Part shown: positions 34,804 to 59,808 of the stretch, one piece after another
Numbering within the stretch: the stretch's first letter is position 1
How the letters are laid out: each line of letters begins with the position of its first letter
IMG/VR virus record: IMGVR_UViG_3300042566_001780
Span: 124,001 to 188,000 of that record
Reading direction: 5' to 3' (one strand)
DNA: 64,000 nucleotides
The notes under the pieces: model-generated
Database searches by the model: none
The model's input: the letters and a program-made list of their open reading frames with translations, nothing else
Told to the model about the DNA's origin: nothing
Position numbers and translations under genes: made by a program

Positions 34804-35529
34804 ATGTCCATTTTACGTGAATTGATTAAACTGCAAGAGAATGCTGATGATATTAAGGTCGTTAAGTCTAATGAACCTTTAGAGTTGTCTGACATTGTTG
34901 AATATTTTCCGTCTAAGCATACAGCAGTGTTAGACAAACTTTGGGGAACTGAACGTTTGACTTGGCATGGTAAAAAGTTCTTTGATGCTAATAATCTCGG
35001 TGATGTTTATGTAGAAGCAGAAGACGCCGTAGATGCTGTTATTGGAGATGTATCTATTGATGCGGGTATTACCTTATCTCCCGTATATCGTTCAAATCTC
35101 CCTGAATTAGATTTTGATCCTGACACTATCGAGTGGCAATCAAAGATCGGCAAGAATGATAAGCAAGAAGTGTATCTTGGCTATGATCCAAAGACTGATA
35201 AGCTCTACATGGGTTTTGATGCTTGGATTGATGAGCAAGATTACAATGACGCCTTTGACGAGCAATTTGAACGTATTGTTGGTGAGCGCTTTGATGATGA
35301 AAACAAAGTCCATGAAGCGATCGCTGAAGAAACATGGAAAAAGTATACGAAGTCCAAGCAGAGCTTTTATGGAATCATTTTTGAAATTTCATATGATGAA
35401 GGTTCAAACTCGATTGATGAAGCATTAGAGTTACCGCAATTTACGAATCCTGGCGGGTTCTATGGTGGCGACTGCTATGGCGAGTTCAAGCGCCAATACC
35501 CTAACGTGATTGATCTTCGTTTGGACTAA
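34804..35529 (+). CDS. Acidic late hypothetical protein, possible internal head protein
   Basis: Late promoter at 34768; start MSILRELIKLQE. Confidence 0.65.
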   Translation: MSILRELIKLQENADDIKVVKSNEPLELSDIVEYFPSKHTAVLDKLWGTERLTWHGKKFFDANNLGDVYVEAEDAVDAVIGDVSIDAGITLSPVYRSNLPELDFDPDTIEWQSKIGKNDKQEVYLGYDPKTDKLYMGFDAWIDEQDYNDAFDEQFERIVGERFDDENKVHEAIAEETWKKYTKSKQSFYGIIFEISYDEGSNSIDEALELPQFTNPGGFYGGDCYGEFKRQYPNVIDLRLD

Positions 35530-35531
35530 AG

Positions 35532-36326
35532 ATGACTGCACATTTATCCGAGCAAGAATTTGACTTTTCGAAAAGTGTAGAACATGCGCTTTCGAAAACC
35601 CTCGACTTAGCAAAATCTGCTTATGTTAACGTCAAAGCTGCTCGTGATGAATACCAAACAAAACAGTCTGAACAAGATGAAGTTACCGATGATGCAGAAG
35701 CTGCTAGAAATGAAATAGAAGTTTCTGCATCAACAATAATTGCTAACTTGATTTTAGACACTGAAGATCCATCCGAAAAAGATATGGAAGCATTTGCTGA
35801 ATTATCTGATGATGAGCTTCAAGAAATTATTACAAAAATAGATGAGATTGCAAAAAACTTTAAACAAATTCCATCAGAGATGTTTAAGGCTTTGCAAGTA
35901 GCAGATTTCTTAGATGCGAGTGATAAAAATAGAGAAACTATCTCTAAAATAACATCTGAAGTCGATACTGCGTTATTGCCAAAAGTAGGCAAAACCATGA
36001 ACAACAATCACAGATATATTGTTGATTTATGGCAAGAAGTTATTGAATCCTATGACGGGAAAACATTCCAATCTGGATTCATTAAAACATTAAAAAAGCT
36101 GTCACAAGAAAATCAAAAGATTAACCAATCACGGGTAGGGATTGGTTCTTTTTTGTATGTGGGTACTAAACTTGTTGAAGTGTTTAGAGCCCAACTTCAA
36201 GTTTTAGAGGTAAGACTGAAGAAACTTAAAACTTTGGTACTAAAAGAGATGTCTACTAATATAGACCGTCCTATTACTAAAGAGCACCTCAAAGCTGTCA
36301 AGTCGCTAGTCCAAAAAATGAAGTAG
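35532..36326 (+). CDS. Helical hypothetical protein
   Basis: 264-aa ORF directly after 35529. Confidence 0.7.
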   Translation: MTAHLSEQEFDFSKSVEHALSKTLDLAKSAYVNVKAARDEYQTKQSEQDEVTDDAEAARNEIEVSASTIIANLILDTEDPSEKDMEAFAELSDDELQEIITKIDEIAKNFKQIPSEMFKALQVADFLDASDKNRETISKITSEVDTALLPKVGKTMNNNHRYIVDLWQEVIESYDGKTFQSGFIKTLKKLSQENQKINQSRVGIGSFLYVGTKLVEVFRAQLQVLEVRLKKLKTLVLKEMSTNIDRPITKEHLKAVKSLVQKMK

Positions 36327-36358
36327 ACCAAAGGTCACCATCATGGTAGAATTATACC

Positions 36359-36577
36359 ATGATCATTACTTCAAAACCCAAACTCTCCCCCGTTACTGCT
36401 GACCAAATTGTTCTTCGCCTTGAGGGTATTACCTTGAGTGCAAAGCAACGAGAGCTTGCAGTTCCTCATATCAATAGTTTCCATGAAGGAAAAATTTCGT
36501 ATATGCGAATGCTAGACTATGTCAAACGCGCATGCAGTCGAAATAAAGTTTCTCTACTGAATCATCATGATGCCTAA
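36359..36577 (+). CDS. Hypothetical protein
   Basis: 72-aa ORF overlapping the next start. Confidence 0.55.
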   Translation: MIITSKPKLSPVTADQIVLRLEGITLSAKQRELAVPHINSFHEGKISYMRMLDYVKRACSRNKVSLLNHHDA

Positions 36578-36755
36578 CTTCAAAACAATTGCTCTTCATG
36601 TAGTTGTGGCTCTATTAACCCTTGGGTTTCTTGTGCCGCCTTTCATTAACTCAACAAGCACTTTTCTCGTTATCATTGGTTTCATTCTTGCAATTGCCAG
36701 TGTGGGTTTGATTGTTTTGTCTGCTGTAAAAATTTACTTTTTCTTCCACAAATGA
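36567..36755 (+). CDS. Small two-TM membrane protein
   Basis: Two hydrophobic helices; precedes the SPFH gene. Confidence 0.65.
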   Translation: MMPNFKTIALHVVVALLTLGFLVPPFINSTSTFLVIIGFILAIASVGLIVLSAVKIYFFFHK

Positions 36756-36768
36756 GGATTTCTCAAAA

Positions 36769-37653
36769 ATGTCTAATCAATTGAAAGTTAAGTTATTCGG
36801 CATTCTGCTGGCACTATCAGGATTCTTCGGGTTGCTATACATAGCCGTGTTTTTAGAACGTGTGCCAGTAGGTCATGTTGGTGTTATTGTTAATCTACTT
36901 GGATCGGACAAAGGTGTTTCAATCCAGGAAGTTGGTCCAGGTCGACATTTTGTCGGCATCAACCAAAAGCTCTACACCTTCCCAACATTCACTATGACAG
37001 TTGGATGGACAGCAGATTCAAATCCTGAAGTGGGATCACCAAATAATGAGGAAATGAGTTTCCAAACATCTGATGGTCTAGTTGTGACTGCAGATGTCGG
37101 AGCATCAGTTAGTGTAGATCCAAGTAAAGTTTCTATCCTATTCCAAAAGTATCGAAAAGGCATGGATGAAATTGTCGATTCTTATGTTCGACGAAATATT
37201 CAAGATGCTTTGGTTCGAAAAGCCGGCGTAATGGGTGTAGAATCTGTCTATGGCGCTGGTAAGAATGAACTGCTGAATGCTGCCTTTGAGGATGTTAAGA
37301 AAGAGATGGCGGATCTCGGGATTATCATTGAAAAAATGTACTGGATTGGTCAGATTCGTCTCCCTGAAGTGGTGGTGACTGCAATCAACAAGAAGATCTC
37401 TGCTACCCAAGAAGCTGAACAGCGTCGAAATGAAGTTGAAAAAGCTAAAGCCCAAGCTGCAATTGAACGCGAAAAAGCGCAAGGCGAAGCTGATGCTGTG
37501 CTGATCGCCGCTGAGGCTCAAGCAGAAGCTAACCGTAAGTTGAGTGCGTCAATCACCAAAGAGCTGAATGACTATCGGTCTATTGAGAAATGGGATGGAA
37601 AGACCCCACAATATATGACAGGTCCAGTGCCTTTCGTCAACTTGCAAAAATGA
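36769..37653 (+). CDS. SPFH/Band-7 (prohibitin-like) membrane protein
   Basis: TM, RVPVGHVGVIVN, FQTSDGLVVTADV, LPEVVVTAINKKI, EAQAEANRKL, KWDG. Confidence 0.9.
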   Translation: MSNQLKVKLFGILLALSGFFGLLYIAVFLERVPVGHVGVIVNLLGSDKGVSIQEVGPGRHFVGINQKLYTFPTFTMTVGWTADSNPEVGSPNNEEMSFQTSDGLVVTADVGASVSVDPSKVSILFQKYRKGMDEIVDSYVRRNIQDALVRKAGVMGVESVYGAGKNELLNAAFEDVKKEMADLGIIIEKMYWIGQIRLPEVVVTAINKKISATQEAEQRRNEVEKAKAQAAIEREKAQGEADAVLIAAEAQAEANRKLSASITKELNDYRSIEKWDGKTPQYMTGPVPFVNLQK

Positions 37654-37695
37654 GTTGTATAATGGGAAGACTAATAATCTTCCCATTTTCATCAA

Positions 37696-38139
37696 ATGAA
37701 AAACCTCTACGCTACACAGAAACTTTGGGCTCGTCGGTGGATGGCTCTTGGATCTTTTCTGTACAAAATTTTCAAAGTGCCAATCAACTTTGTACTTTTT
37801 TGTATTAGAATTCCAATCGACTTCTATAAATTTTTGAAGGAAGAACCCGGCGCGGCAATATTTGTAAGCGTTGTCATTTCACTAGTTTTTTCGGTGATCT
37901 TTGCAGTATATACAGACGTACAATTGCAAAAACCAGCTGAAGGTCATCTCATAGCTGAAGTTATGGCAATTGACGGATGTACCGAAAATACTATGAAGCT
38001 GCGAGCAGAACGTCAATCTTCTCCAATGACGCGACGAGATGTTCAGCGTGTCAAAGAAGACTGTGAGAAATACTGGGAAGATCAACGCATTCTTAAAGAG
38101 CAAAAAGAAGCACTTCTGAAAAAAGCTAGACTTCTGTGA
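37696..38139 (+). CDS. Membrane-associated hypothetical protein
   Basis: One TM helix (AAIFVSVVISLVFSVIFAVY). Confidence 0.65.
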   Translation: MKNLYATQKLWARRWMALGSFLYKIFKVPINFVLFCIRIPIDFYKFLKEEPGAAIFVSVVISLVFSVIFAVYTDVQLQKPAEGHLIAEVMAIDGCTENTMKLRAERQSSPMTRRDVQRVKEDCEKYWEDQRILKEQKEALLKKARLL

Positions 38140-38146
38140 GATTATC

Positions 38147-38803
38147 ATGAAAAAGTATCCGCGAACTGTTCACCTCCCTTGGTCCCTTGGAACCGAGAGC
38201 GATGACAAGATGTTGCAAAATGTAGATCATTTTGTTGGCAAGCAGATTGTCGTCACTATCAAAATGGATGGTGAGAACTGTACTGCCCACGCAAATGGTC
38301 ACATTCATGCTCGTTCTTTGGATAGTGTCTCGGGTCCTGATCGTGATTGGGTTAAAAAGTTTCTGCTTGAAAATGTGTGTTACAATCTTCCTGAGAACTG
38401 GCGTGTTTGCGGTGAAAATCTTTTTGCTAAGCACTCTATCTTCTACGAAGATCTGAAATCCTACTTTATGGGTTTTAGCATTTGGAATAACGAAAACATC
38501 TGTCTTTCGTGGGATGACACTCTTGCATGGTTCGAGTTGCTGAATGTGACTCCAGTTGAAGTTGTCTATGAGGGTATTTTTGATGTTGATGCATTGAAGA
38601 AGCTTGAAAAGACTATGGATTTTTCTAAGCAGGAAGGATATGTCATTCGACTAAAAGATTCATTCCACTATGATGAATTTGGCACCAATGTAGCAAAGTT
38701 TGTAAGAGCAAATCACGTGCAGACTGATCAACACTGGCGCCATTCTGCAATTGTTCCCAATGTCCTTAAGGATGAAAATGAAAAAGAAACGTGCAATAGT
38801 TAA
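38147..38803 (+). CDS. RNA ligase (compact nucleotidyltransferase domain)
   Basis: KYPRTVHLPWS, motif I KMDGEN, VCGEN, EGYVIR, AKFVRANH. Confidence 0.85.
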   Translation: MKKYPRTVHLPWSLGTESDDKMLQNVDHFVGKQIVVTIKMDGENCTAHANGHIHARSLDSVSGPDRDWVKKFLLENVCYNLPENWRVCGENLFAKHSIFYEDLKSYFMGFSIWNNENICLSWDDTLAWFELLNVTPVEVVYEGIFDVDALKKLEKTMDFSKQEGYVIRLKDSFHYDEFGTNVAKFVRANHVQTDQHWRHSAIVPNVLKDENEKETCNS

Positions 38804-39295: not shown

Positions 39296-39305
39296 AGGAA
39301 TTATC

Positions 39306-39899: not shown

Positions 39900-39950
39900 T
39901 CACGATAATCCTATAAATAGGCAATAGTAACTAAAGGACTATTGCCTATT

Positions 39951-40562
39951 ATGTTTTCTACTCTCAAAGAAATGTTATCCCTCCAAGAGGGTGATGTCAT
40001 CAAAGCCAATTTTGGTAAACCTATTCGGTCTTCAGGAATTCCTGTCCCTCCTGGATTCGACCGATTTGAAGTTGAAGATGTCAATGATTCTGCTTCCAAC
40101 ATCATTGGTATCAAGGATGGCAATCGCAAAAAAGTATCTACTGCTTCTCCTGAACTAGCAAAAGCTTTGGTAGATGCATATAATCGTGGTGGTGAAACGT
40201 CATTTGATATTCAGCCCATGAAATTTGGCTCCAGTGAACAGCTTGCTCTAGATGATGTTGGTATATCATTGACGGAAAAACCATCTTACTGGGATGATTT
40301 TGAAGGATCTGGGTATGCTGCTAAGAGAAATCTAAATGATCTCAGTTTAAAGAGAATTGAAAAAGTTTTAGGTAGAAAAATTCCTATAATGACTGGTGAA
40401 GAAATTTATGGGACTTCAGTGAAACCTCGTGGACCTTTGGCTTCAGTCAAGAATATGCCAGATGACAGTTTTGTTATCATCAAATTTGATGATGGATCAA
40501 AGTATCTGGCATATACTAGAGAAGCAAATACCTACATTCGCACATGGCAAAAAATCGACTGA
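39951..40562 (+). CDS. Late hypothetical protein, possible internal head protein
   Basis: TATAAATA at 39912; start MFSTLKEMLSLQE. Confidence 0.65.
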   Translation: MFSTLKEMLSLQEGDVIKANFGKPIRSSGIPVPPGFDRFEVEDVNDSASNIIGIKDGNRKKVSTASPELAKALVDAYNRGGETSFDIQPMKFGSSEQLALDDVGISLTEKPSYWDDFEGSGYAAKRNLNDLSLKRIEKVLGRKIPIMTGEEIYGTSVKPRGPLASVKNMPDDSFVIIKFDDGSKYLAYTREANTYIRTWQKID

Positions 40563-41382: not shown

Positions 41383-41430
41383 CACTTGACATAATTGTTC
41401 TCCTATAAATAGAGTATAAGGAGAACAATT

Positions 41431-42099
41431 ATGCAAAAAACACAAAAGAAATATCATTATATTTATAAAACAACTTGTCTAATTACTAAAAAATTTTATA
41501 TAGGCATGCACTCAACTGATAACTTAAATGATGGTTATCTTGGAAGTGGAAAGATTCTTAGTTATTCTATTGCCAAATATGGTAAGGCCAATCATGTTTG
41601 CGAAATTTTAGAATATCTACCTAATAGAGAAGCACTAAACGATCGTGAAAAAGAAATAGTAAATGAGGATTTATTAAATCATCCATTAAATATTAATCTT
41701 GTATATGGTGGTTCTGGTGGAACTCATGGAAAAGAGGCCGAGGTATGGGCAAGACCGGGGTATAAAGAAAGAGTAGCTATTTCTTTATCTAATGCGATGA
41801 AAAAACGTTGGTTACATATAGAATATGCAAATAAAATTAGTTTGCATAGGAAAATACTTTGGACTAATGATGAATATCGAAACAATATGCTTGTTGTTTT
41901 GCGATCGGCTTTTTTGGGAAAACAACACACTGCAAAAAGCAAAGCATTAATTGGTGAAAAAAATTCAATAAGTCAATTAGGATCAAAGAATTCCCAGTTT
42001 GGAACTTGCTGGATTACTAATGGAATAAAACCAATTAAAATAAAGAAAGAGTGTCTTGACGAATATTTGGTGAAGGGGTATCGTTTAGGAAGAAAATAA
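41431..42099 (+). CDS. Seg-like GIY-YIG homing endonuclease inside the tRNA cluster
   Basis: YHYIYKTTCLITKKFYIGMHSTDNLNDGYLGSG; NUMOD3-like GKQHTAKSKALI; own TATAAATA promoter at 41404. Confidence 0.88.
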   Translation: MQKTQKKYHYIYKTTCLITKKFYIGMHSTDNLNDGYLGSGKILSYSIAKYGKANHVCEILEYLPNREALNDREKEIVNEDLLNHPLNINLVYGGSGGTHGKEAEVWARPGYKERVAISLSNAMKKRWLHIEYANKISLHRKILWTNDEYRNNMLVVLRSAFLGKQHTAKSKALIGEKNSISQLGSKNSQFGTCWITNGIKPIKIKKECLDEYLVKGYRLGRK

Positions 42100-42741: not shown

Positions 42742-42790
42742 ATCTTTTGCTAAATAGATCCTATGTAGCCTTTTCGTAGGAGAAACACTC

Positions 42791-43387
42791 ATGCTAGTTA
42801 GCGAGCTTTTTGAAGCAAGAAACCCAAAATTAACCTATACCGAGAAACAAGTCAAGAAGGTCTTAGACCGGGTGACCGTTGAATTGACTGGAAATGAGAG
42901 TGGCGTTATGTCACGTTTAACTACTCGTTATTCCCGTTTAGACAAAGCTGCAAAATTAATGCAGGAAAAGCGTAATGCTCTAAACGAGGAAATGAAGCAA
43001 GTAGCAGAAAGCTTGTTTGATGCTCAAGATGAAGTGTTGACTCGTGTTGTGGATACGGTGTCATACACCATTACTTTGTCTAAAGCAGAAAAGGCAGAAT
43101 CAAAATCCCCAACCAAAAAAGTTGATTATTCTGCAGTGGTAAAAGAGCTTGCTCAGATGTTGCCTGAATTACAAGAAAAGATCGACCAAATCACTGAGCA
43201 ATACACCGAAATTATTCAACCAAAAGATACCCCGGTTAAGTTAATTGTTAAGTCAAAACTTGATGAAGGATTCACCGCTTTTGCAAAATCTTTAGTCAAG
43301 TCATTCAAAGAAATGCTGAAATCTATCAAATCTTGGGGTAAGGATTATGATAAGAGATTGGCTGCTTTGAAGAAACAGACATCATGA
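42791..43387 (+). CDS. Late helical protein, probable internal head protein
   Basis: CTAAATA at 42750; RBS AGGAG; start MLVSELFEA; internal KLDEGF. Confidence 0.7.
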   Translation: MLVSELFEARNPKLTYTEKQVKKVLDRVTVELTGNESGVMSRLTTRYSRLDKAAKLMQEKRNALNEEMKQVAESLFDAQDEVLTRVVDTVSYTITLSKAEKAESKSPTKKVDYSAVVKELAQMLPELQEKIDQITEQYTEIIQPKDTPVKLIVKSKLDEGFTAFAKSLVKSFKEMLKSIKSWGKDYDKRLAALKKQTS

Positions 43388-44100
43388 AACTTAGACAATT
43401 GCTTGAAAGCCAATCTCAATTTCTTCAAACAAGAGAAGAGATTGAAGCATGGCTCCAAAAGATGAAAATTGAAAACTACACCATTAGAAATGATCTTATG
43501 GTAGATGTTGATGGGGATGTTAACCTTTCTTTTAAAGGCTTATCATTCATTCCAGTCCAATTTTTCACAGTTATTGGAAATTTTTGGTGTTCACATAATC
43601 AATTAACATCACTCGACGGAGCACCTAGAGAAGTTGGCAGAGATTTTGAATGCGGTGAAAATGAGTTAACTTCTCTTAAGGGAGCACCTAGGGAAGTTGG
43701 TGGAGATTTTGATTGTTCTCATAATCAATTAACATCTCTTAAGGGAGCACCAAAAGATGTTGGCAAAGATTTTGATTGCAGCAATAATCAATTAACATCT
43801 CTTAAGGGTGCACCTAGAGAAGTGGGCGGAAATTTTTGGTGTTCACATAATCAATTAACATCACTCGACGGAGCACCAAGAGAGATAGGCGGTCATTTTA
43901 ATTGCAGCACAAATCAATTAACATCTCTTGAAGGTGCTCCAAGAGAAGTAGGCGGAAGTTTTTATTGTAGATGGAATAAATTAACTTCCCTTGAAGGTGC
44001 ACCTAGAGAAGTTGGTGGAAGTTTCAATTGTACTGGTAATGAATTGGCTTCATTAGATGGCATTGGAAATGTCACAGGTCAAATTTATTCGGATCTCTAA
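43384..44100 (+). CDS. Leucine-rich repeat protein 1 (eight 21-aa units)
   Basis: MKLRQLLES cap, then repeats of NQLTSLxGAPREVGGxFxCxx. Confidence 0.85.
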   Translation: MKLRQLLESQSQFLQTREEIEAWLQKMKIENYTIRNDLMVDVDGDVNLSFKGLSFIPVQFFTVIGNFWCSHNQLTSLDGAPREVGRDFECGENELTSLKGAPREVGGDFDCSHNQLTSLKGAPKDVGKDFDCSNNQLTSLKGAPREVGGNFWCSHNQLTSLDGAPREIGGHFNCSTNQLTSLEGAPREVGGSFYCRWNKLTSLEGAPREVGGSFNCTGNELASLDGIGNVTGQIYSDL

Positions 44101-44101
44101 A

Positions 44102-44572
44102 ATGAAGCTAAAACAATTATTTGAAAATAGCAATAACCAATTTCTTCAAACCCGAGAAGAAATTGAGACATGGCTCCAAAAGATGAAAATTAGAAACTAC
44201 ACCATCAGAGATGATCTGATGGTAGATGTTGATGGTAATGTAGATTTAAGTAAAAAGAATTTATCATTTATTCCAGTCAAATTTTGGGAAGTTGGTGGAG
44301 ATTTTGATTGTTCTCATAATCAATTAACATCACTCAATGGTGCTCCCAGAGAAGTTGGTGGAAGTTTTTGGTGTGGCCGTAATCAATTAACATCTCTTAA
44401 GGGAGCACCTAGAGAAGTTGGTAGAGGTTTTTTCTGCTATAACAATCAATTAACATCTATTGAAGGTGCTCCCAGAGAAGTAGGCGCGGATTTTAACTGC
44501 AGATTTAATAAATTAACATCTCTTGATGGCATTGGTAATGTAGGTGGCCAGATTTATTCGGATCTATCATGA
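44102..44572 (+). CDS. Leucine-rich repeat protein 2 (about four units)
   Basis: Start moved to ATG 44102 (MKLKQLFEN); close paralogue of protein 1. Confidence 0.85.
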   Translation: MKLKQLFENSNNQFLQTREEIETWLQKMKIRNYTIRDDLMVDVDGNVDLSKKNLSFIPVKFWEVGGDFDCSHNQLTSLNGAPREVGGSFWCGRNQLTSLKGAPREVGRGFFCYNNQLTSIEGAPREVGADFNCRFNKLTSLDGIGNVGGQIYSDLS

Positions 44573-45330
44573 AATTAAGACAATTATTTGAAAATAGCAA
44601 TACCCAATTTCTTCAAACTAGAGAAGAAATTTCTAATTGGTTGCTCGACAATACCATTCTCAAACCTCATGATTTCCAAATCAATGCCGATTTAACTGTT
44701 GACGTTTTTTCTAGCTTCAAAATCTTCATGTCAGCATGGGATTATGATTTGTACCGGCTGCCAGTGCGATTTGGATATTGCACTGGCAGTTTTGCACTAT
44801 CTCGTATAGCAAATCTACAAACATTAGAAGGTTGTCCAACCCATGTTGAAGGCTCTTTCTTTTGTGAAAGAACAGGCATCCAGGACCTCCAGGGTGCTCC
44901 CAGGGAAGTCGGTGGAGATTTCTTTTGTGGCTATTCAGAATCTCTAATGTCACTCGTGGGTGCTCCAGATAAGGTTGGAAGAAACTTTAAATGCAATAAT
45001 TGCCCTGATTTAGAATCTCTAGAGGGCGGTCCTTCTGAAGTTGGCTATGACTACAATTGCTCTTATAATGCATTGCGATCCTTAGTCGGAGCTCCTAGAG
45101 AAATAGGTGGTGAATTTGACTGCTCAAATAATGAATTATTTTCTCTAAAGGGAGCGCCTAGGGATGTTGGTCTTTCATTTGATTGCGCAAATAATAATTT
45201 GACATCATTGAAGGGTGCTCCATTGCACATAGGCGAAGATCTTATAGCTTGGGGAAATCAAATCGCCGGTTCTGCAAATTACGGCTATACACCCCGATCT
45301 ATTGGCGGTGAAATAATCGGGGTTGAATAA
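44569..45330 (+). CDS. Leucine-rich repeat protein 3
   Basis: MKLRQLFEN start; the same repeat type, more diverged. Confidence 0.85.
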   Translation: MKLRQLFENSNTQFLQTREEISNWLLDNTILKPHDFQINADLTVDVFSSFKIFMSAWDYDLYRLPVRFGYCTGSFALSRIANLQTLEGCPTHVEGSFFCERTGIQDLQGAPREVGGDFFCGYSESLMSLVGAPDKVGRNFKCNNCPDLESLEGGPSEVGYDYNCSYNALRSLVGAPREIGGEFDCSNNELFSLKGAPRDVGLSFDCANNNLTSLKGAPLHIGEDLIAWGNQIAGSANYGYTPRSIGGEIIGVE

Positions 45331-46100
45331 TGAAATTAGTTGACTTGTTTGAATCAGAAGATGATTTTGATTTCACTACCAAAGATGGAATAGCAGAGTG
45401 GTTAAAAGTAAATTATATTTGGGAGTTTTATGACATTCATGATGACTTAAGTGTATCTGTTTTTGACAATGTCAATATCACAGTTCTTGGAAAAGACAAG
45501 TCAAAAATTCCAGTTAAGTTTAGAAAAGTATACGCATTTTTAACTGACGTACCAATTACCTCTCTTGAAAATTTTCCAGATTCAGCAAGAGAAATTATTA
45601 TTCAAAGTGCAAAAATAAAGAATTTGCAAGGAATCACCCAAGATACCTTTGCATATTCAATACAAGCATGTAAAGAGTTGGAATCTTTAGATGGATTGCC
45701 GCAAGAAGTTAATGGAAGCATTTACATTAACAGATGCCCAATTACTTCCTTAAAGGGATCACCATTAAGAATCGACGGAGATTTTTCTGTTGTTCGGTGT
45801 GGTTTAAAGTCGTTGAGATATGGCCCAAGAGAAGTCACTGGATTACTCGATATACGAAAAAATGAACTAACTTCACTAAAAGGATGTCCTGAAGGTGTTG
45901 ATTACATAGATGCCACATCTAATTTGATCACTAATTTGATTGGTGTTCCGGAATCAGCAGATGAACTCTATTTAACAGATAATCCTTTAGAATCTTTAGA
46001 AGGATTGCATGATGGTCGTATTGTTGTTAGATCTATAGGTGCTAATATTTCAAAAGACGAAAAATTGAAATACCCAAATGCCACAATTGTGACTGAATGA
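45330..46100 (+). CDS. Leucine-rich repeat protein 4
   Basis: MKLVDLFES start; LESLDGLP and LTSLKGCP repeats. Confidence 0.8.
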   Translation: MKLVDLFESEDDFDFTTKDGIAEWLKVNYIWEFYDIHDDLSVSVFDNVNITVLGKDKSKIPVKFRKVYAFLTDVPITSLENFPDSAREIIIQSAKIKNLQGITQDTFAYSIQACKELESLDGLPQEVNGSIYINRCPITSLKGSPLRIDGDFSVVRCGLKSLRYGPREVTGLLDIRKNELTSLKGCPEGVDYIDATSNLITNLIGVPESADELYLTDNPLESLEGLHDGRIVVRSIGANISKDEKLKYPNATIVTE

Positions 46101-46115
46101 AACTGGAGAAAAGTT

Positions 46116-47615
46116 ATGAAATTGAAAGAACTATTAGAATCATATGATGAATTTGACTTTTCTACCAAAGAAGGTATTTCTAATTGGCTAAAAGAAAAAG
46201 GCAACAGAATTGGCAATTACACTATACACGATGATTTGAGTGTATCATTCCATAGCACTGTTTATTGGCATTGGCTGGATGGGATTACTAAATTACCATT
46301 CAAAATTCGCGATGTTAATGGCACCTTTGAGCTCAATGACGTTCCATTAACTACCCTGGAAAATTTTCCAGATAACGCTAATACAATCCATCTTGAAAGT
46401 CTTGATATTGAAGACTTGACAGGAATTACCCAAACAGCAGAACGATATATTATCAAACACTGCCCTAATTTGAAAAGTCTAGATGGATTGCCGCCTCATG
46501 TAGAAGGCCTAGACCAATGGGCTGGAGTGTTTATTCATAATTCTGGAGTTGAAAGTTTAAGCGGAAGTCCAAGCACAATAAACGGCGATTTTGTTGTAAT
46601 TCGATGCAAATTGAAGTCACTCAAATACGGTCCCAGAGAAGTAACTGGTGAATATGACGTTGAATATAACCAGTTAGAATCGCTGAAACACAGCCCAAGA
46701 GCAGCAAGCCAACTATTAGTCGGATATAACAAAATAACATCTCTTAAGGGATGCACACCTGGTATTACTGTATTGAATATTGAGGGAAATCCAATATCTT
46801 CACTAGATGGATTGCCGGAATCTCTACATAATGATGGTATCGTGTATGCCGAGAGGACAAATATCAGTGATGAAGAAATAGCAAAATACCCAAATGGATT
46901 CTTCATCAAAGATCATGGAATGTTTGTTGCTGAAGGATGGAAAGAAAAAGCGCAAGTTGCGGGCGCAGCGGCATTAATGGCTACTGCTCTATTGGTGAAT
47001 CGCGGACCAGAGGAAGCCCCAAGTGATAGGGCAATTGCAGGAAAAATTGATCATTCTAACATTTCTGTAGAAAAACCAAAATTGAATAACAAATCGTCTG
47101 TCTTTAGTGGTTCAGCTAAAGTTCTTTATGATGAAGCGAAGAAGCAGGGTATACGCGGGGCAGAATTGATTCAATTGATTGCGCAATCTGCACATGAGAC
47201 TGCAAATTTTGGTAAGCTTATTGAGATGGGTAGTAAGGATTATTTCAAGAAATATGATCCCAAACATAACCCAAGGAAAGCCGAAATACTTGGAAATACT
47301 AAGGTTGGAGATGGTGAAAAATTTAAAGGTCGCGGTTTTCTCCAATTAACGGGTCGTGATGTTTATATGCGAGCTGGAAAAGCTTTAGGATTGCCACTAG
47401 AAGAGAAACCGGAATTGTTAGAAGATCCAAAGATTGGTGCTAAAGCGTCAATTTGGTTCTGGAAAACCAGGGTTCAGCCAAAGGTCAAAGATTTCTCTGA
47501 CGTTGAAGAAGTCACCCAATACATTAACCCGGGATTAAAGGGGTTATCTGATCGACAAAAGAAATTTCGAGAATTTTCTAATCTCTATAATCTAGAAACA
47601 AAAAAGTCAAAATGA
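46116..47615 (+). CDS. LRR protein 5 fused to a GH19 (chitinase/lysozyme) domain
   Basis: MKLKELLES; LRR units; hydrophobic linker; QSAHETANF, FKGRGFLQLTGR, ASIWFW, VTQYINPG GH19 motifs. Confidence 0.85.
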   Translation: MKLKELLESYDEFDFSTKEGISNWLKEKGNRIGNYTIHDDLSVSFHSTVYWHWLDGITKLPFKIRDVNGTFELNDVPLTTLENFPDNANTIHLESLDIEDLTGITQTAERYIIKHCPNLKSLDGLPPHVEGLDQWAGVFIHNSGVESLSGSPSTINGDFVVIRCKLKSLKYGPREVTGEYDVEYNQLESLKHSPRAASQLLVGYNKITSLKGCTPGITVLNIEGNPISSLDGLPESLHNDGIVYAERTNISDEEIAKYPNGFFIKDHGMFVAEGWKEKAQVAGAAALMATALLVNRGPEEAPSDRAIAGKIDHSNISVEKPKLNNKSSVFSGSAKVLYDEAKKQGIRGAELIQLIAQSAHETANFGKLIEMGSKDYFKKYDPKHNPRKAEILGNTKVGDGEKFKGRGFLQLTGRDVYMRAGKALGLPLEEKPELLEDPKIGAKASIWFWKTRVQPKVKDFSDVEEVTQYINPGLKGLSDRQKKFREFSNLYNLETKKSK

Positions 47616-52574: not shown

Positions 52575-52821
52575 CTTGTCTGTGTGAAACTCATTATGGC
52601 GCAATTTTGGGTGTCCCTGAGTGCTTCTGGTGACTTCTAGCAATAGCGCTAAATTAGCTTGGTCTATTGCATCTCTTCTCAAAAGCTTCTTATTTGCAAC
52701 TGCTCAGCACTAAAGCTTATTTGCCCCATAATGCCTATAAATTGCGCGCACAGCTTATGGCATAGCCTTTTTCTCTTTCTCTCAAGTTCATTCTTCTAAA
52801 TAGACTATTGAAGAACTGTGT

Positions 52822-54735
52822 TTGTCGTCAAACAAAGAGAAGGTTATTGCGATCATGGCATCAAATGAAATCAACCAACTTACTACCCATGACTTATGGG
52901 TAGAAGCAAGAAAATTTAACTTAAGTATTACAAGACCAACATCAAATACTATTCAACTATCTATTCGCAAGCCAGTTAGTGATGGTCCTGTTGATGGTGC
53001 AGTCTTAACCTTAAGTGATCATCCTATTACTGCTACTGAGTATCCTGAAGATGGGACTCAGTATACCGGTGGATCTCTAGTATTTGGGCAAACTGGAGTT
53101 CAAAAGATAGGTAGAGCTCAAGTCATTTCATTCTGGTCAACCTTCTTTCAAGTTCCATTCCCTTCCGGGACAATTTCATCAGATGGAATGATAGAGTGGA
53201 CTGTCACAGTAACTGGTACTAACCCATCTGCGACATACTATGCATCTATTCATGCGTGCACCAATATTCTTCAGTACTACCCAATTGGTATTCAATCATA
53301 TCCTTTGGAAAGTTCACGCGTCGAAAAAGATTCTTCTGCATATACAGGATCTATTCCTACACTTCCGTCTGCACCAACGTCCCCAACACCTGGGATGGTG
53401 TATCATGATCTTCAACTAAACTCGGTTCAATATTGGGATGATACTCGTTCTGTATGGGTGCCCACCCGCTCAGATACTATTACGACTGGGCCTATCAATC
53501 CAGGAATTCCTGGCCAAACTTATCTATTTTCTCCAGCAACTACACTAAAGGTTTTTAATGGAAAAGAATGGACGATAGCTTCATCCACGAATCTACAACT
53601 TAAAACGAGTCCTACTCAATGGACAAATATGGGATCAGTAACATCTGGTACAAAATTTCCAGAAACGCCTAATGTAGCAGACTTCTTCTATGATTTTACG
53701 AGTCAAAGAATTCAATTTTGGGATGGCGCAGCTTGGCAGATTCCAACTACAAGCAATACCTTGTTTAATACAGGAAGTTCAATCGTGCCTGCATTTGCTG
53801 GCAACTTTACTGTAGAACCAATTGATTTTGTCAATCCATATGTGGGCCTACTTTTCTACAATACGTCCCAGAAAATTCTGAATGTGTGGAATGGTACCTC
53901 TTGGCAACAAGCAAATACATCCCAACAGGGTACACCCACTACTGACAAAATCCGAATTGGCAATGATGGTTCTTATGACGAACGTCTGCGTCTAATTCGC
54001 GTCATCAAATCAGAATTTGGATGGCCCAATTCCTGTATTGAGTTAACTGAAGATAATTTCAACACAGCTATTGATAATGCGCTTGAGACATATCGCCAAC
54101 TTTCTGCTGGTGCTTATGAAAAACGGTATATCCTACAGACGTTAGTTACAGATCAGCAAACTTACTATCTCAATAACCCAGTAGACGAGACTGACAGGAT
54201 AGTTACAGTTCAGAAAATTCACAGATTGAATATTCTGGGTGCTAATTCTATGAATTGGGACACTAACGTTTACTTCCAAACTTTCCTATCTCAGTTCTAT
54301 AGTTCTGGATACACTGACATTCTGTCTATCCATTTGATGCATTCTTTAAGTGAAGAATTCCAAAGAATCTTTGCAGGTGAAATGACATTTTTGTGGAATG
54401 AAGCCCGAAGAGAATTAATGATCACCCGCCGAGTAGCTAGAAATGAGAAAGTCGTTCTTGAAGTAGATCTTGAGAGAACTGAGCAGGAACTCCTACTCGA
54501 TCGATATGCAAAGCAATTTATTCAGCAATATGCTACTGCCACAGTCAAAGAGATGCTCGGATTACTTCGTTCAAAATATTCAAGTGGTACTCCAGGTCCT
54601 GCTGGTACTATCACATTGAATGGTGATACCTTGATTGCTGAAGCTCGCCAAGATTTTGCAGAACTCAAAGAAGCACTTTTAAATTGGGAATATCAAAGTG
54701 CTGCAATGGGCAATGTGTCAATGATATTTGGGTAA
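52822..54735 (+). CDS. Neck protein (T4 gp13-like C-terminal domain) with N-terminal beta-repeat extension; start may be 52855
   Basis: IKSEFGWP...IELTEDNFNTAIDNAL...ITLNGDTLIAEARQD; GxxYxD repeats upstream; late promoter at 52796. Confidence 0.75.
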   Translation: MSSNKEKVIAIMASNEINQLTTHDLWVEARKFNLSITRPTSNTIQLSIRKPVSDGPVDGAVLTLSDHPITATEYPEDGTQYTGGSLVFGQTGVQKIGRAQVISFWSTFFQVPFPSGTISSDGMIEWTVTVTGTNPSATYYASIHACTNILQYYPIGIQSYPLESSRVEKDSSAYTGSIPTLPSAPTSPTPGMVYHDLQLNSVQYWDDTRSVWVPTRSDTITTGPINPGIPGQTYLFSPATTLKVFNGKEWTIASSTNLQLKTSPTQWTNMGSVTSGTKFPETPNVADFFYDFTSQRIQFWDGAAWQIPTTSNTLFNTGSSIVPAFAGNFTVEPIDFVNPYVGLLFYNTSQKILNVWNGTSWQQANTSQQGTPTTDKIRIGNDGSYDERLRLIRVIKSEFGWPNSCIELTEDNFNTAIDNALETYRQLSAGAYEKRYILQTLVTDQQTYYLNNPVDETDRIVTVQKIHRLNILGANSMNWDTNVYFQTFLSQFYSSGYTDILSIHLMHSLSEEFQRIFAGEMTFLWNEARRELMITRRVARNEKVVLEVDLERTEQELLLDRYAKQFIQQYATATVKEMLGLLRSKYSSGTPGPAGTITLNGDTLIAEARQDFAELKEALLNWEYQSAAMGNVSMIFG

Positions 54736-54741
54736 TCAATT

Positions 54742-56556
54742 ATGGCAGATTTAAACACTTGTCCAAATGGGGCTGGATCAATTAACAATCCAGCAAATGC
54801 ATTACCTGAAATTCCGGCATATGTAGTACCTGAAATTCCAGATGTCAACTATTCAGTCACTGACTGTTTAGTTGACTCAAATATACAAGAGCAAATTGCA
54901 GTTGAGGCTCTCAATATCAGCGGAGCTCCGCTCAACATATTCAAGCTCCTAGGTGTTCATGAACAGGGCAAACTAATTGACTTAACAGGAAATGGTACTC
55001 CGCTTAATGGAAGTGATAATGTTTTTGATTCACTCGCATCTAATTGGGCATCTTCTCAAGTGGGAATGGCTGTGTTGACAACCCCATCATGGGTAGGATA
55101 TGATTTTGGTGTTATAAAAACGAGTTATGGATTGGACGCAAATGGACCTGGTATTGCAAACAATCAGCATATTACATCATTGAGAATTACTCAACCTGCT
55201 CAAAATAGACGGGCTCTTCAAATTAAAGTTGAACAATCTGATGGGCAATATTCATTATCCAGCCTAATCATTACTGGTTCTGGTACTGCTACTATTACTG
55301 ACTTCACCGCTGGGCCCAAATGCAAACCTGGTATATTTTCATTAGTAGCTGATGCAACTAATTCATTTACGGTTTTCTTTATTTCAGGTACCACTGAATT
55401 AGTCGGCATCTTAAAGCCTAATCTTAGATTCAATTCAAATTACGGATCATTCACGTTAACATCAAATTCCACTTTTGCCAATGGCGACATCATCACTGCA
55501 TCAATTCAATTGAAGTGGAATCGTGTTGATATTGTTAATTTAGTAGATGACGCTACAGCGCAGAATGTTCGCATTAAACAATCTAAGCCATCTCGCTATT
55601 GGAGAATAGTGCCTACATCATTTAGTGGTGTTGCTTTAAATGAGCCCTGGGAAATATCAAAGCTTGAGCTTTTTGATTATCAAACCACACGGCTTGATGA
55701 TATTCAGGATCCACTATTACTTGAGAATCGCGACCGTGATTATGCATCTCAATCAGTTCAATTAAAGGTTGCCTATCAACCAACTGATACTATATCTGAT
55801 CTATCCAAATTTGGATTTCAGATGACAGATAGTTTCACATTTACCGCAAGCTTTGCCCAAATGGTGAAATTACTTGGAAGGCCTATCGTAGTCGGTGACG
55901 TTTTAGAGCTTCCAAGTGAAATGCAATATGACCAAAATCTGAAACCGGTTAGAAAGTTCTTAGAAGTATCAGATACATCATGGGCGGCTGATGGGTATAC
56001 GACTGCCTGGAAACCGATTATGTATCGATTCCAAGCATCTCAGTTAATTCCATCTCAGGAACATCGCGACATTCTTGGCACCGTTGACACTCAGAAATTC
56101 CTTGTTGATGACGGTACTTTCCTTGATGGTATTGAACAAATTCAAACTGCTCCATTAACGATTTCGCAACAAGTAAAAACTGAAGCCTTACAAGAAGTAC
56201 CAGAAAAAGGTACGAACGTAACTGAAATTGCATCTGGTACTAGTCGATACGGTGAACCTGGTACTTATGATGGACGTGATCTTTATGTTGAAGATGGGTT
56301 ACCACCAGATGGGTTACCATATACCGAAGGCTTCAAACTCCCAGATGTAACTGATGCTTCTGATGGAGATTATTTCAGATTAAACTATGATCCAAAGATG
56401 AATATTGCTTCACGTCTTTACAAGTTTAGCTCAGTTAAAAATAAGTGGATTTATGTTGAAACTGATAGACGTCCTATTAATACTTCACACAAGCCTTCAC
56501 AATTACAAGTCATGCAACAACCTAAAGTCGTTTCCTTAGAAAGCAAAAACCTATGA
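54742..56556 (+). CDS. Neck protein (T4 gp14-like) with large insertions
   Basis: IAVEALNISGAPLNIFKL; DPLLLENRDRDY; LSKFGFQM...VGDVLELP; position between gp13 and gp15. Confidence 0.7.
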   Translation: MADLNTCPNGAGSINNPANALPEIPAYVVPEIPDVNYSVTDCLVDSNIQEQIAVEALNISGAPLNIFKLLGVHEQGKLIDLTGNGTPLNGSDNVFDSLASNWASSQVGMAVLTTPSWVGYDFGVIKTSYGLDANGPGIANNQHITSLRITQPAQNRRALQIKVEQSDGQYSLSSLIITGSGTATITDFTAGPKCKPGIFSLVADATNSFTVFFISGTTELVGILKPNLRFNSNYGSFTLTSNSTFANGDIITASIQLKWNRVDIVNLVDDATAQNVRIKQSKPSRYWRIVPTSFSGVALNEPWEISKLELFDYQTTRLDDIQDPLLLENRDRDYASQSVQLKVAYQPTDTISDLSKFGFQMTDSFTFTASFAQMVKLLGRPIVVGDVLELPSEMQYDQNLKPVRKFLEVSDTSWAADGYTTAWKPIMYRFQASQLIPSQEHRDILGTVDTQKFLVDDGTFLDGIEQIQTAPLTISQQVKTEALQEVPEKGTNVTEIASGTSRYGEPGTYDGRDLYVEDGLPPDGLPYTEGFKLPDVTDASDGDYFRLNYDPKMNIASRLYKFSSVKNKWIYVETDRRPINTSHKPSQLQVMQQPKVVSLESKNL

Positions 56557-57293
56557 GACTAAAAGAATTATTCGAAGACATTCATGTCATAAAGGATATC
56601 TGGACTAAGGAAGAAGCAGATGATCGAGTAGCCAATACTGCATTTCGGCTTGAAGATAAATGGAAAAAATATCCATCAAAAATAAAGTTTCCAGTCGAAA
56701 ACTTTGAAGTAGTTCAAGTTAGAAATGCTGGCATCATTATTGACTGGGAAATAGGTTTGCGTAACAAACTGAACGGGCAATTTGCTGCTATCTTGAATGC
56801 AGACCAGACCTCTATCAAAGTTGGCAAAAAGAAAATAGTTGGTAAAGCTACATCTGTTGCTTCAGTGAATGGCAATTATCTTGGTCAAGGACTAATGCAA
56901 AAGCTCTACCAATACTTGTCTGATAATGGAGAAATTCTATTCTCGTCAACAGACCAGTCTTTTGGTGGTAAAAAGCTATGGCAAAAATTTGTTCAGGAAA
57001 ACAACGAAAACACCTTCTTAGTGTTAGAACTGTTTGAGCATAGCTTTTCATTTGTTCAATCAAAAAATAGTTTTGGCAGATTAAGAAATGCTGAAGGAGT
57101 GTCACCACTTGAATTCTATGAAAAGAATAAGAGTAAAAATGGTGTAGCTCTCATCATCAAAGCTGATTATGACAAACTAATCAAACTTGCATATTTGAAG
57201 TCTTCGGGTAGTTTCAATCCAAGCTATTTTATGACACTGCCAAAAGGCCATCCCCTCATTAGCGAATTCAATTCAATAGCTTTCAGACCATGA
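56553..57293 (+). CDS. GNAT-like protein with MRLKELFE N-terminus
   Basis: YLGQGLMQKLYQYL...STDQSFGGKKLWQKF resembles GNAT motifs A/B. Confidence 0.55.
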   Translation: MRLKELFEDIHVIKDIWTKEEADDRVANTAFRLEDKWKKYPSKIKFPVENFEVVQVRNAGIIIDWEIGLRNKLNGQFAAILNADQTSIKVGKKKIVGKATSVASVNGNYLGQGLMQKLYQYLSDNGEILFSSTDQSFGGKKLWQKFVQENNENTFLVLELFEHSFSFVQSKNSFGRLRNAEGVSPLEFYEKNKSKNGVALIIKADYDKLIKLAYLKSSGSFNPSYFMTLPKGHPLISEFNSIAFRP

Positions 57294-58234
57294 TTACAAA
57301 CTATCATTACTCTGCGCAATTAAAATCATATTTGCGCCAAATTGCTCTTATATTCAATGGTCTCCAAGTAAAAACTGGAGTTGGTGAATGCGGTGAAGAG
57401 GAATTTATTTCTGTTCCATGCGTTATTGGTAGCAAAGATCGAGTAGTCGCTGCGTTAATGTCTGGAAATACGAAGAACCGAGTATTCTCACTACCAACTA
57501 TGTCTCTGTTTCTTCAAAACTTGGCCATGGCGCCAGAAAGAAGAAAAGTACAGGCAATGGTAGATCAACGTGTCACAATGAAAACAGGTGGCGTATTTCC
57601 TGACGACTTGACTGTCGTCAAACGCGCGATGCCCGTACCATTCAATATGACAGTTGAACTGACAATCTATACTTCTAACAATGATCAGATGTATCAGATA
57701 TTGGAGCAAATATTAGTTCTATTCAATCCAGATGTTCAATTTCAAAAATCAGATGCGCCATTTGACTGGACAAAACTAACAAAAATTGAACTTATTGATA
57801 TTGCTAATGAAGAAAATTATCCTGCAGCTACAGATAGAAGAATCATAAATTGGACTCTTACTTTTGAGGTGCCTATCTATATGAGCGTGCCAATGGGTGT
57901 CAAGGACGATTTAGTAAGAAAAGTCACTATTCAACTTTCTGCCAATTCAAATATGACTCCAATTAATGAGGTTGATGAAGATGGTAATTTAACTCCCTTT
58001 GGAACACCGATTGCTATCATGGAATATGATACTCGGCCATTCCCGACTATAACTGAGCAAGATTGTACGTTTACTTCAACTTCTGTGCCAGAAAATCCGC
58101 AAGTTAATGATACTTGGTGGAGACCTGCTCTAAATAAAGCATTTAGGTGGAACGGTGCTTCATGGGTAGATTTTGAACAATACCTTCCTCCACAGAGAAC
58201 TAATGTTGATCCTTTTGAGCCAAAACCACTATGA
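57290..58234 (+). CDS. Tail terminator / sheath stabilizer (T4 gp15-like)
   Basis: YHYSAQLKSYL...ISVPCVIGSKDR...LPTMS...PVPFNMTVEL...QILEQILVLFNP. Confidence 0.85.
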   Translation: MITNYHYSAQLKSYLRQIALIFNGLQVKTGVGECGEEEFISVPCVIGSKDRVVAALMSGNTKNRVFSLPTMSLFLQNLAMAPERRKVQAMVDQRVTMKTGGVFPDDLTVVKRAMPVPFNMTVELTIYTSNNDQMYQILEQILVLFNPDVQFQKSDAPFDWTKLTKIELIDIANEENYPAATDRRIINWTLTFEVPIYMSVPMGVKDDLVRKVTIQLSANSNMTPINEVDEDGNLTPFGTPIAIMEYDTRPFPTITEQDCTFTSTSVPENPQVNDTWWRPALNKAFRWNGASWVDFEQYLPPQRTNVDPFEPKPL

Positions 58235-59808
58235 AATTATCTGAAGCAAAAATGTCATCTAGTCGCTTTAAAGCGGCCTTAGATAAAGGAGATGCAACTA
58301 TTGGTTTTGAATTTGAGATGTTGATTTCTCCAGATTCAAATTTGTACCGACCAGTTAAAGATCCAGATGCGTTAAGGACACTTGATGTCAGCAATTTGAC
58401 AGATATTAACGAATTACTAGATATTCCTGGTGTTGGGAGATATGATAAAAATAATGTCCAAACCGCATTTTGGAAATGGCAAGATGAACAAGCTGAAGAA
58501 TGGATAGATGACAATTGGCGAGATTGGGATGATGAAGATGAGCCTAGTGAATCTGCAGCTCGAGACCAGGCAGAATTTCACATTCTAGATCAAGTTAGAA
58601 AACAAGCAGTCTTTACATTTGAAGATTACTGGAAAACATTCAAGAATGCAAAAGAGGCATTATTTGAGTTCAACATTGATCCGGCATTTGGTTGGGTAGA
58701 TGATAACGAAGTCTATATTGACATTGAAGAAGATCTAGAAACACGATATGACAAAACATGGGCCGAAGTTAAAGAAATTGTTGCACAGAGTTTACTAAAT
58801 TCCCCTGAACTTGGCATTGCTAAATTTGGTGAATCATCAAATGGTCAATGGAAATTAATGGATGACGGATCTATTACAGACAAAGATGCAAATGAGTATC
58901 CAAATATTGTTGGTTATGGATATGAATTAATATCGCCACCATTAGCTGCAAGTGAAGCATTAGAAGCAATGCAAAAAGTGTTTGATTGGATGAGTAGACA
59001 CAAAATTGAAACTAATCAATCGACCGGCTTCCATATCAACATTTCGATGGATAATTTAGATTCATTAGACCCAGTCAAATTGATCTTATTTTTGGGTGAC
59101 GATTACGTATTGAACAAATTTGATAGATCGACATCAAAGTACACAAAATCACAAATCCAAAATCTTTATTGGTATGTGAAGAACAGCAATCCTTCAAAAG
59201 ATATAAAACATGAAAATGGAATTTACACGATTGCAAAACGTGTCTTACTAAGCTCTGAAAAATATCGATCTGTTAATTTCAAAAAATTAGAACTTCAAAA
59301 TCCGTATCTTGAATTTAGATCAGTTGGTAATGAAGATTATCATAGAAGATCAGAAGCAATTTTAGACACTATTGGAAGATTTCTGGTGGCATTGAATATT
59401 GCATGTGACCCAGAAGCTTATAAGCAAGAATTCCTTAAGAAACTTGTGCTACTTGGTGCAAATAACAAAGATGAAATGTCAGACGACCCATTAGCTTCAC
59501 TTATACCTTTAGCTGATGTATATGCTAAAGCACTCGATGATTTGAAACAATGGGGCAATGAGCCTACATTGGCGGGACTATTAGCCTTAAAGTCAATTAT
59601 TAGGATGGCGCATTTTGAAGTTCAATATGAACACAAAAAACTAAGATCAACGCATATCAACAGACTGCGTGATTTGATTTCTATGATTGGACTGACTCCA
59701 AAAAGTTTCATTGAATTAATTAGCAGTGATGAATATAACAAATTATTTCAAGTGCAGCAAATCACTAGTCAAATGCAAGATCTAAAACTACTTCCGAAAA
59801 GCGCTTAA
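58231..59808 (+). CDS. Putative amidoligase (COOH-NH2 ligase type 2)
   Basis: IGFEFE, DGS, GYELISPPL, STGFHINIS, KYRSVNF, YLEFR. Confidence 0.8.
   Translation: MKLSEAKMSSSRFKAALDKGDATIGFEFEMLISPDSNLYRPVKDPDALRTLDVSNLTDINELLDIPGVGRYDKNNVQTAFWKWQDEQAEEWIDDNWRDWDDEDEPSESAARDQAEFHILDQVRKQAVFTFEDYWKTFKNAKEALFEFNIDPAFGWVDDNEVYIDIEEDLETRYDKTWAEVKEIVAQSLLNSPELGIAKFGESSNGQWKLMDDGSITDKDANEYPNIVGYGYELISPPLAASEALEAMQKVFDWMSRHKIETNQSTGFHINISMDNLDSLDPVKLILFLGDDYVLNKFDRSTSKYTKSQIQNLYWYVKNSNPSKDIKHENGIYTIAKRVLLSSEKYRSVNFKKLELQNPYLEFRSVGNEDYHRRSEAILDTIGRFLVALNIACDPEAYKQEFLKKLVLLGANNKDEMSDDPLASLIPLADVYAKALDDLKQWGNEPTLAGLLALKSIIRMAHFEVQYEHKKLRSTHINRLRDLISMIGLTPKSFIELISSDEYNKLFQVQQITSQMQDLKLLPKSA

Follow-up and report, generated by a model that had tools for sequence, protein, structure and literature searches.

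The stretch of DNA analysed here (the window) comprises bases 124,001-188,000 (64 kb) of the IMG/VR record IMGVR_UViG_3300042566_001780, which is 291,687 bp long, has a completeness estimate of 82% and is labelled G000. The subject of this analysis is a short N-terminal sequence, or leader, shared by late proteins encoded in it. The leader has the core form M-[KR]-[LIV]-x-x-L-[LF]-E, spans 8-13 residues, always starts at residue 1 and is carried by about 20 late proteins of the genome. A preliminary description had quoted ten such N-termini from the window and proposed a candidate capsid-targeting signal on unrelated late proteins. All ten were found where it had placed them, at the head of the following genes (window coordinates).

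34804-35529 (+): 241-aa protein of unknown function; 12-residue leader MSILRELIKLQE, then N; long class, ending L-Q-E
39951-40562 (+): 203-aa protein of unknown function; 13-residue leader MFSTLKEMLSLQE, then G
42791-43387 (+): 198-aa helical protein; leader MLVSELFE, then A; weak coiled-coil-type Pfam matches only
43384-44100 (+): leucine-rich repeat (LRR) paralog, 238 aa; leader MKLRQLLE, then S
44102-44572 (+): LRR paralog, 156 aa; leader MKLKQLFE, then N
44569-45330 (+): LRR paralog, 253 aa; leader MKLRQLFE, then N
45330-46100 (+): LRR paralog, 256 aa; leader MKLVDLFE, then S
46116-47615 (+): 499-aa protein; leader MKLKELLE, then S, followed by an LRR domain and a C-terminal glycoside hydrolase family 19 (GH19; lysozyme/chitinase-like) domain
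56553-57293 (+): 246-aa neck-operon protein of unknown function; leader MRLKELFE, then DIHV
58231-59808 (+): 525-aa amidoligase-domain protein (PF12224, 46.6 bits); short possible leader MKLSE, then A

The genome belongs to an uncultured T4-related jumbo phage. Judged by tail sheath and major capsid protein, its nearest cultured kin is Ralstonia phage RsoM2USA (MG752970.1; 53-56% identity, with 53% for the capsid protein), followed by the Stenotrophomonas/Xanthomonas jumbo phages RAS14, CM1, Xoo-sp13 and XacN1, and then by the Rak2/121Q group at about 40%. At the DNA level, no relative came up when 18 kb of the window were compared by megablast with cultured phages. Two related, near-complete genomes, G005 (342,591 bp) and G001 (336,116 bp), were retrieved via their capsid genes for comparison.

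The description of the bearers as unrelated held only in part. Five of the eight strong cases in the window (43384, 44102, 44569, 45330 and 46116) are LRR paralogs, which match each other at 1e-8 to 1e-67 in blastp with the first 12 residues removed. Since seven more genes elsewhere in the genome (genome positions 75025, 75558, 77494, 190661, 196470, 260549 and 261187) also match after removal of the leader, these genes constitute a single 12-member family with blastp values of 1e-8 to 1e-80, which makes up 12 of the ~20 bearers in G000. In contrast, the products of 42791, 56553, 58231, 34804 and 39951 are unrelated to one another and to the LRR proteins.

The LRR proteins are built from short tandem repeats of ~21 residues with the consensus NxLTSLEGAPxxVGGxFxC (Pfam LRR_4, 32.6 bits against a cut-off of 27). 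The AlphaFold2 model of the 43384 protein has a predicted local distance difference test score of 95.9 and regular beta-strand periodicity; residues 1-10 score only 66 and contain a separate helix (residues 2-10), while the score exceeds 94 elsewhere. Foldseek matched this model to LRR domains of the IpaH/SspH/YopM type (probability 1.0, TM 0.6). The paralog at genome 190661-191842 (minus strand, just outside the window) carries MKLAQLFE at residue 1 and has ~140 extra residues before the LRR domain, an insert without a match in Pfam or PHROGs. Homologs of the 43384 protein number more than 7,466. Among the best 120 of these, 48 have a hydrophobic-hydrophobic-Glu sequence within the first 16 residues, against ~4 expected, and the dominant leader lengths are 8 (MKHVKLFE, MKLIQLFE) and 11 residues (MKYLKTYQLFE). 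Some metagenomic LRR homologs have no leader and begin at the cap helix. The tag is a module separate from the LRR fold.

For gene 44102, the register of the family and the preceding stop at 44100 identify 44102 as the true start, and not the ATG at 44057 that opens the longest open reading frame (ORF). The latter has been wrongly taken by automatic callers, including in entry P0031 of a public protein collection. The GH19 domain of the 46116 protein covers residues 345-457 (PF00182, 41.8 bits against a gathering threshold of 25.5; PHROG 181 endolysin, 2.9e-33), and the LRR-GH19 fusion, if packaged, could have the cell wall as its target at the time of ejection. The virion chitinase ORF272 of XacN1 was considered as support for the packaging of this fusion and was rejected, being closer to the leaderless GH19 gene at genome 111443-112060.

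Most of the non-LRR leader proteins have no function assigned by Pfam or PHROGs, and the 34804 protein has no match in either; an AAA-type NTPase is among the bearers. The 34804 and 39951 proteins have a common leader class and are not homologous, as no blastp match connects them. Orthologs of the 34804 protein retain the leader (MQLLKELLSLQE, then S, in G001; MQTLHELLNLIKE, then A, in G005), as do those of the 42791 protein (MKVSELLVE, then D, in G001; MHKFTTINQLLNE, then A, in G005). The gene for the amidoligase-domain protein adjoins the sheath gene in G000, G001 and G005. Its product, a candidate packaged enzyme, has full leaders in its orthologs, namely MKLDVLFE, then R, in G005 and MITFKQFLSE, then R, in G001. 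Outside the window, the same tag occurs at genome 5872, 16895 and 288926, and looser, longer leaders were spotted via orthologs at 229602 (MKLTLKQFLTE; MRSFKQFLLQE in the G005 ortholog), 261837 (MVKLTLSEFLVE) and 283260 (MKLHQLVSSLTE).

The 56553 protein represents a non-LRR family. Its ortholog in G001 begins MKVTFKQFLE, then DIHV, and an exhaustive HMMER search yielded 37 relatives, while a word-pattern search of IMG/VR yielded none. Leaders of these relatives, which come from metagenomes, include MKLRELFE, MRLKDLLE, MKTFKQFLAE, MITFKQFIAE, MITFKQFLE, MKTFRQFLE and MKPTFKQFLE, and after every one of them the mature domain opens with the same [DE]-I-x-V-D. In the MAFFT alignment, R-L-K-E-L-F-E of the window protein stands column for column with T-F-K-Q-F-L-E. 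The ortholog sets of 56553, the amidoligase gene, 42791 and 229602 all swap 8-mer and T4-like leader types.

Frequency of the leader and comparison with T4

A genome-wide motif scan, which the preliminary description had named as a check, gave a strong N-terminal excess. Using a simple ORF caller (371 ORFs, 92,334 aa), [KR][LIFV]x2-3[LIFM][LFIM]E was found at residue 2 in 14 ORFs of G000, against 0.11 expected from 27 internal occurrences. The corresponding figures are 19 against 0.125 in G005 and 9 against 0.147 in G001, and a reversed (backwards-read) degenerate DNA pattern used as a control had 0 matches in the three genomes. All six Leu codons are in use at Leu3 and Leu6 of the tag, and the codons of G005 are GC-richer throughout; therefore, it is the peptide rather than the RNA that is under selection. 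Strict 8-mers end in L-[FL]-E in 38 of 39 cases, while the longer classes end in L-Q-E, L-T-E or L-V-E and take forms such as M-x-x-L-x-E-L-[IL]-x-L-Q-E and M-K-L-T-L-K-Q-F-L-T-E in G000. Because the 43 bearers across G000, G005 and G001 fall into ~30 BLAST families, the notion of one tag on many unrelated proteins still holds. The leader is absent from neck, sheath, tube and fibre genes.

The internal-protein leader of T4, to which the preliminary description had likened the tag, was confirmed in the T4 record (NC_000866), where ipII and ipIII begin MKTYQEFIAE, ipI begins MKTFKEF and a 54-aa ORF at 19,110 begins MKTFKEFIKE. Mutational work on this capsid-targeting sequence (CTS) assigned targeting to residues 4 and 7 and processing to residues 8 and 10 (PMC9026906). 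The four positions coincide with the conserved aromatic/aliphatic and Glu positions of the leaders described here. As orthologs swap leader types, the two types align by column and the functional positions of T4 are conserved, the 8-mer of the window can be regarded as a compact T4-type leader. Both the T4 CTS and the present leaders lie at the extreme N-terminus, are short (10-19 residues in T4 and 8-13 in the present phage), sit on otherwise unrelated proteins, end in L/I-x-E and occur in a phage with a gp21-family protease; late expression, a feature of the T4 genes, is predicted here from a promoter proxy. The 8-mer itself, however, shares only the pattern x-hydrophobic-K-[QE]-hydrophobic-hydrophobic-E. 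Further differences from T4 are that the phage is a distantly related, uncultured jumbo phage of ~300 kb and that the cargo set is larger and dominated by LRR proteins, with enzymes in addition.

Other head proteins offer partial parallels. The structural and core head proteins of T4 (gp24, MAKINELLRE; gp67, MEGLIE; gp21, ...QLLIE) have leaders of similar length with a hydrophobic-hydrophobic-x-E ending, comparable to MQLME/N of the capsid protein and MKLSE/A of the amidoligase-domain protein here, but the bearers described here are accessory proteins. In phiKZ and SPN3US, a gp21-related protease cleaves head proteins, among them ejection and inner-body proteins, after S/A-x-E, and the propeptides are usually longer than 100 residues (PMC5694885). 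The likeness is that head proteins of giant phages are processed after Glu and that N-termini are conserved between diverged paralogs (PMC5694885). The present leaders, in contrast, have Leu two positions before the predicted cut and are only 8-13 residues long, and T4 is much closer.

Protease, capsid protein and virion data

The genome has a T4-type head module, which lies outside the window (genome coordinates).

68497-70161: portal gene
70238-70864: gp21-family prohead protease gene (PF03420 Peptidase_S77, 95 bits)
71217-72098: gp22-like scaffold gene
72131-73405: gp23-family capsid protein gene

T4 gp21 cleaves after L/I-x-E (PMC9026906), and the L-[FL]-E ending of the leaders conforms to this motif. 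In the capsid protein, [LIM]-x-E occurs four times, at residues 3, 14, 29 and 37 in the predicted propeptide, and 0 times in the remaining 384 residues, for which the proteome rate predicts 4.9 occurrences and the composition of the protein itself 1.8. These four sites (MQLME/N, ALLE/G, TLxE/N and HLxE/T) are kept in almost all of the ~75 capsid-protein N-termini compared, XacN1, RAS14 and 121Q being among the cultured phages covered, and the last of them closely precedes the conserved mature N-terminal region. The scaffold is dense in L-x-E-type sites (6.8 per 100 aa against 1.27 proteome-wide). In XacN1 and RsoM2USA, its blastp homolog is an unnamed ORF that lies directly upstream of the capsid gene, a position at which 121Q has an annotated gp22-like scaffold. 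In the mature parts of the leader proteins, the ratio of observed to shuffled L-x-E is 0.73, compared with 1.19 for other proteins. Co-folding the first 30 residues of the 43384 protein with the protease scored 0.00, which is evidence neither for nor against.

The annotated start of the protease reads MFWSENMQLLVEQ. A start at Met7 gives MQLLVE, which resembles MQLME of the capsid protein and QLLIE-9 of T4 gp21, and this could point to another start codon or to self-cleavage near the N-terminus.

Virion data come from the nearest cultured relative. Five ORFs of RsoM2USA start with M-x-T-F-K-x-[FY]-L-x-E, and others have 8-mer-like tags. In blastp, ORF89 (MKTFKQFLSE, then SKDYL) matches the LRR family of the window as a homolog (1e-12). 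It was identified with LC-MS/MS among the ten bands that were most abundant in purified virions (PMC8504454). ORF257, the source of another abundant virion band, sits amid leader-bearing genes in the cluster ORF254-258. In the window, gene 56553 occupies the slot that separates the neck genes from the sheath stabilizer; in RsoM2USA, this slot holds three leader-bearing paralogs, ORF403-405 (271358-274009). These proteins of ~290 aa have an [FY]RG motif ~60 residues in, which may point to ADP-ribosyltransferases of the kind of T4 Alt, a packaged enzyme.

Late transcription, proposed explanation and alternatives

The leader genes had initially been placed behind TAAATA late motifs or in the neck operon. 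Plain TAAATA was rejected as a promoter mark because it is too loose and shows no enrichment in the genome, with 131 copies where base composition predicts roughly 400. The consensus is instead CTAAATA(G), a variant of the T4 TATAAATA, which is found 27-45 nt upstream of operon-leading ATGs at ~50 sites genome-wide; plain TATAAATA has 16 copies only. CTAAATA(G) precedes the protease, a small head gene, and neck, sheath, tube and giant structural genes, and also the operon-leading leader genes at genome 5872, 75025, 190661 and 261187 and at window 34804 and 42791. With this consensus as a promoter proxy, 19 of the 22 leader genes fall into CTAAATA-headed transcription units, while among the other genes 128 of 349 do so (odds ratio 10.9, p = 5e-6). 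The remark on late motifs holds in this narrower form, and the leader genes are probably late. The sites of the window, with one gene for context, are as follows.

34768-34774 (+): late-promoter-like CTAAATA, 36 nt upstream of gene 34804
39912-39919 (+): TATAAATA, identical to the late-promoter octamer of T4, 39 nt upstream of gene 39951
42750-42757 (+): CTAAATAG, predicted late promoter heading the operon 42791-47615
50148: CTAAATA(G) site
52796-52803 (+): CTAAATAG, predicted late promoter for the neck operon, whose neck gene has its ATG at 52855 and encodes a PHROG 211 head-tail adaptor
57290-58234 (+): tail sheath stabilizer, T4 gp15-like (PHROG 227/11196), without leader
59835-59841 (+): CTAAATA, predicted late promoter of the tail sheath gene (59900-61741)

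A homing-endonuclease gene (41431-42099; PHROG 314, 2e-35) lies directly upstream of the leader operon, and TATAAATA occurs there on both strands, at 41404 and 41467.

From the sequence evidence, the leaders appear to be prohead-targeting sequences that are removed by the gp21-like protease and mark packaged and probably ejected proteins; a probability of about 0.65 is assigned to this explanation. It is close to that of the preliminary description, whose T4-like capsid-targeting leader is the best-supported account given the L-x-E end, the gp21-family protease, the capsid sites, the leaders of homologs and ORF89, once the claim that all bearers are unrelated is set aside. Core binding, cleavage, a place inside the capsid and injection are steps that we infer, and they would proceed as follows. 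The tagged proteins would be made late in infection from CTAAATAG promoters, and the amphipathic leader (hydrophobic at i, i+3 and i+4) would dock the cargo onto the scaffolding core of the assembling prohead. The gp21-family serine protease (70238-70864) would then cut behind the terminal Glu of L-x-E, while also trimming the major capsid protein and shredding the gp22-like scaffold. The mature cargo would remain inside the head alongside the DNA until infection, when it would be expelled into the host. Such cargo would comprise the 12-member LRR family with its one GH19 fusion, the amidoligase-domain protein, the AAA-type NTPase and several proteins of unknown function.

Several points weigh against this explanation. 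For every bearer, we infer both the capsid interior and cleavage at the Glu. The 8-mer has no spacer before the Glu and one N-terminal residue fewer than the T4 leader; in the absence of the T4 spacer residue, the rules of recognition may differ. Gene 56553 and the amidoligase gene are located in the neck/tail operon and not in the head module. Further, the RsoM2USA paper and its supplement contain no peptide lists and assign ORF89 to no part of the virion. The depletion of L-x-E in the mature parts is modest, and it carries little weight because paralogs are not independent samples. It should also be noted that the looser leader classes were set post hoc, after inspection of the data. Finally, the majority of the G000 bearers belong to one family, and gene duplication therefore accounts for part of the excess.

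The operon position of 56553 and the amidoligase gene could be accommodated if the leader were an uncleaved tag for virion assembly or chaperone recognition, acting at the neck, the tail, the capsid exterior or a chaperonin. The three RsoM2USA paralogs in the slot of 56553 are in line with this idea, as is the fact that mass spectrometry places ORF89 in whole virions only, and the N-terminus of T4 gp23 has reportedly been linked with GroEL. However, such a tag would not be expected to end in a protease motif or to find its best match in the CTS of T4 internal proteins rather than in a tail protein. Moreover, neck, sheath, tube and fibre genes are all free of it and L-x-E is depleted in the mature parts, which makes an assembly tag unlikely. 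A different possibility is that the motif is simply the inherited N-terminus of the LRR family, spread by recombination at a conserved 5' end and without a targeting function. The dominance of LRR paralogs among the bearers of G000, the LFE-type N-terminus in 48 of the top 120 metagenomic LRR homologs and an identical 24-nt 5' end common to three LRR paralogs would all fit. Inheritance within one family is nevertheless quite improbable as an explanation, given the ~30 unrelated families that bear the tag in three genomes and the retention of the leader by the non-LRR 56553 family across wide divergence, with a switch of leader type. The leader is also located outside the LRR fold, stays N-terminal despite the 140 inserted residues of one paralog and varies freely in its codons.

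The shared start could in principle be a feature of the mRNA, with A/T-rich 5' coding sequence and a Lys second codon boosting late expression. AAA or AAG as the second codon is a common enhancer of initiation, and the genes are late and probably highly expressed. Conservation at the amino-acid level, the use of six Leu codons and the GC-richer codons of G005 argue otherwise. The major structural genes, moreover, are without the tag, and an invariant Glu8 has no rationale at the RNA level. A translational origin thus seems very remote.

Novelty and reach of the leader system

The CTS of T4, which has been used to recognise ip genes in T-even phages, is textbook knowledge (PMC3012670, PMC12373910), and all three known injected proteins of T4 inhibit type IV restriction enzymes (PMC12373910). 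No published account of T4-type short leaders in jumbo phages related to RsoM2USA, XacN1 or Rak2, or of an LRR cargo family, was found in the literature searched. To our knowledge, almost nothing has been reported on the injected cargo of jumbo phages outside the phiKZ group. Injected phage proteins are the first phage products to meet the defences of the host.

It is conceivable, if rather speculative, that a T4-type leader code tags the whole injected proteome across a very large and mainly uncultured radiation of jumbo phages related to T4, and that its main cargo, the LRR family, consists of delivered binders of host proteins. Apart from this wider scenario, the T4-like leaders described here indicate that the targeting signal of T4 predates the T-even phages by far and is found well beyond them. 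With a short, recognisable leader, packaged or injected proteins would become predictable from sequence alone in thousands of uncultured jumbo phages, and the large LRR family, the wall hydrolase fusion and the amidoligase-domain protein would be flagged as delivered effectors. In the wider scenario, the LRR family, hypervariable and with thousands of members, would represent anti-defence or takeover effectors, in parallel to the role that T4's internal proteins play and with the LRR architecture of secretion effectors. The short leader itself would provide an 8-residue tag for loading foreign proteins into large capsids.

The comparison with the effectors IpaH, SspH and YopM extends to the fold of the LRR paralogs only, with the ~20-30% identity typical of repeats. 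By analogy, both would be delivered proteins whose LRR domains bind host targets. The phage proteins, however, have no E3-ligase domain, and the route of delivery and the target organism differ.

Among the cultured relatives, the exact 8-mer DNA pattern has 1-2 matches in RsoM2USA, XacN1 and RAS14 and none in 121Q and PA5oct. A loose T4-like 10-mer pattern in 121Q and PA5oct gave counts no better than the backwards control, and therefore no leader is claimed for these two phages. On the JGI contig Ga0620612_0000047 (384,578 bp), from another uncultured jumbo phage, LRR and non-LRR genes start with leaders of the kind MIHIKNYRIFE, MKRIIKYEIFE and (L)KHLKIYENF, and the leader system therefore reaches beyond the studied clade.

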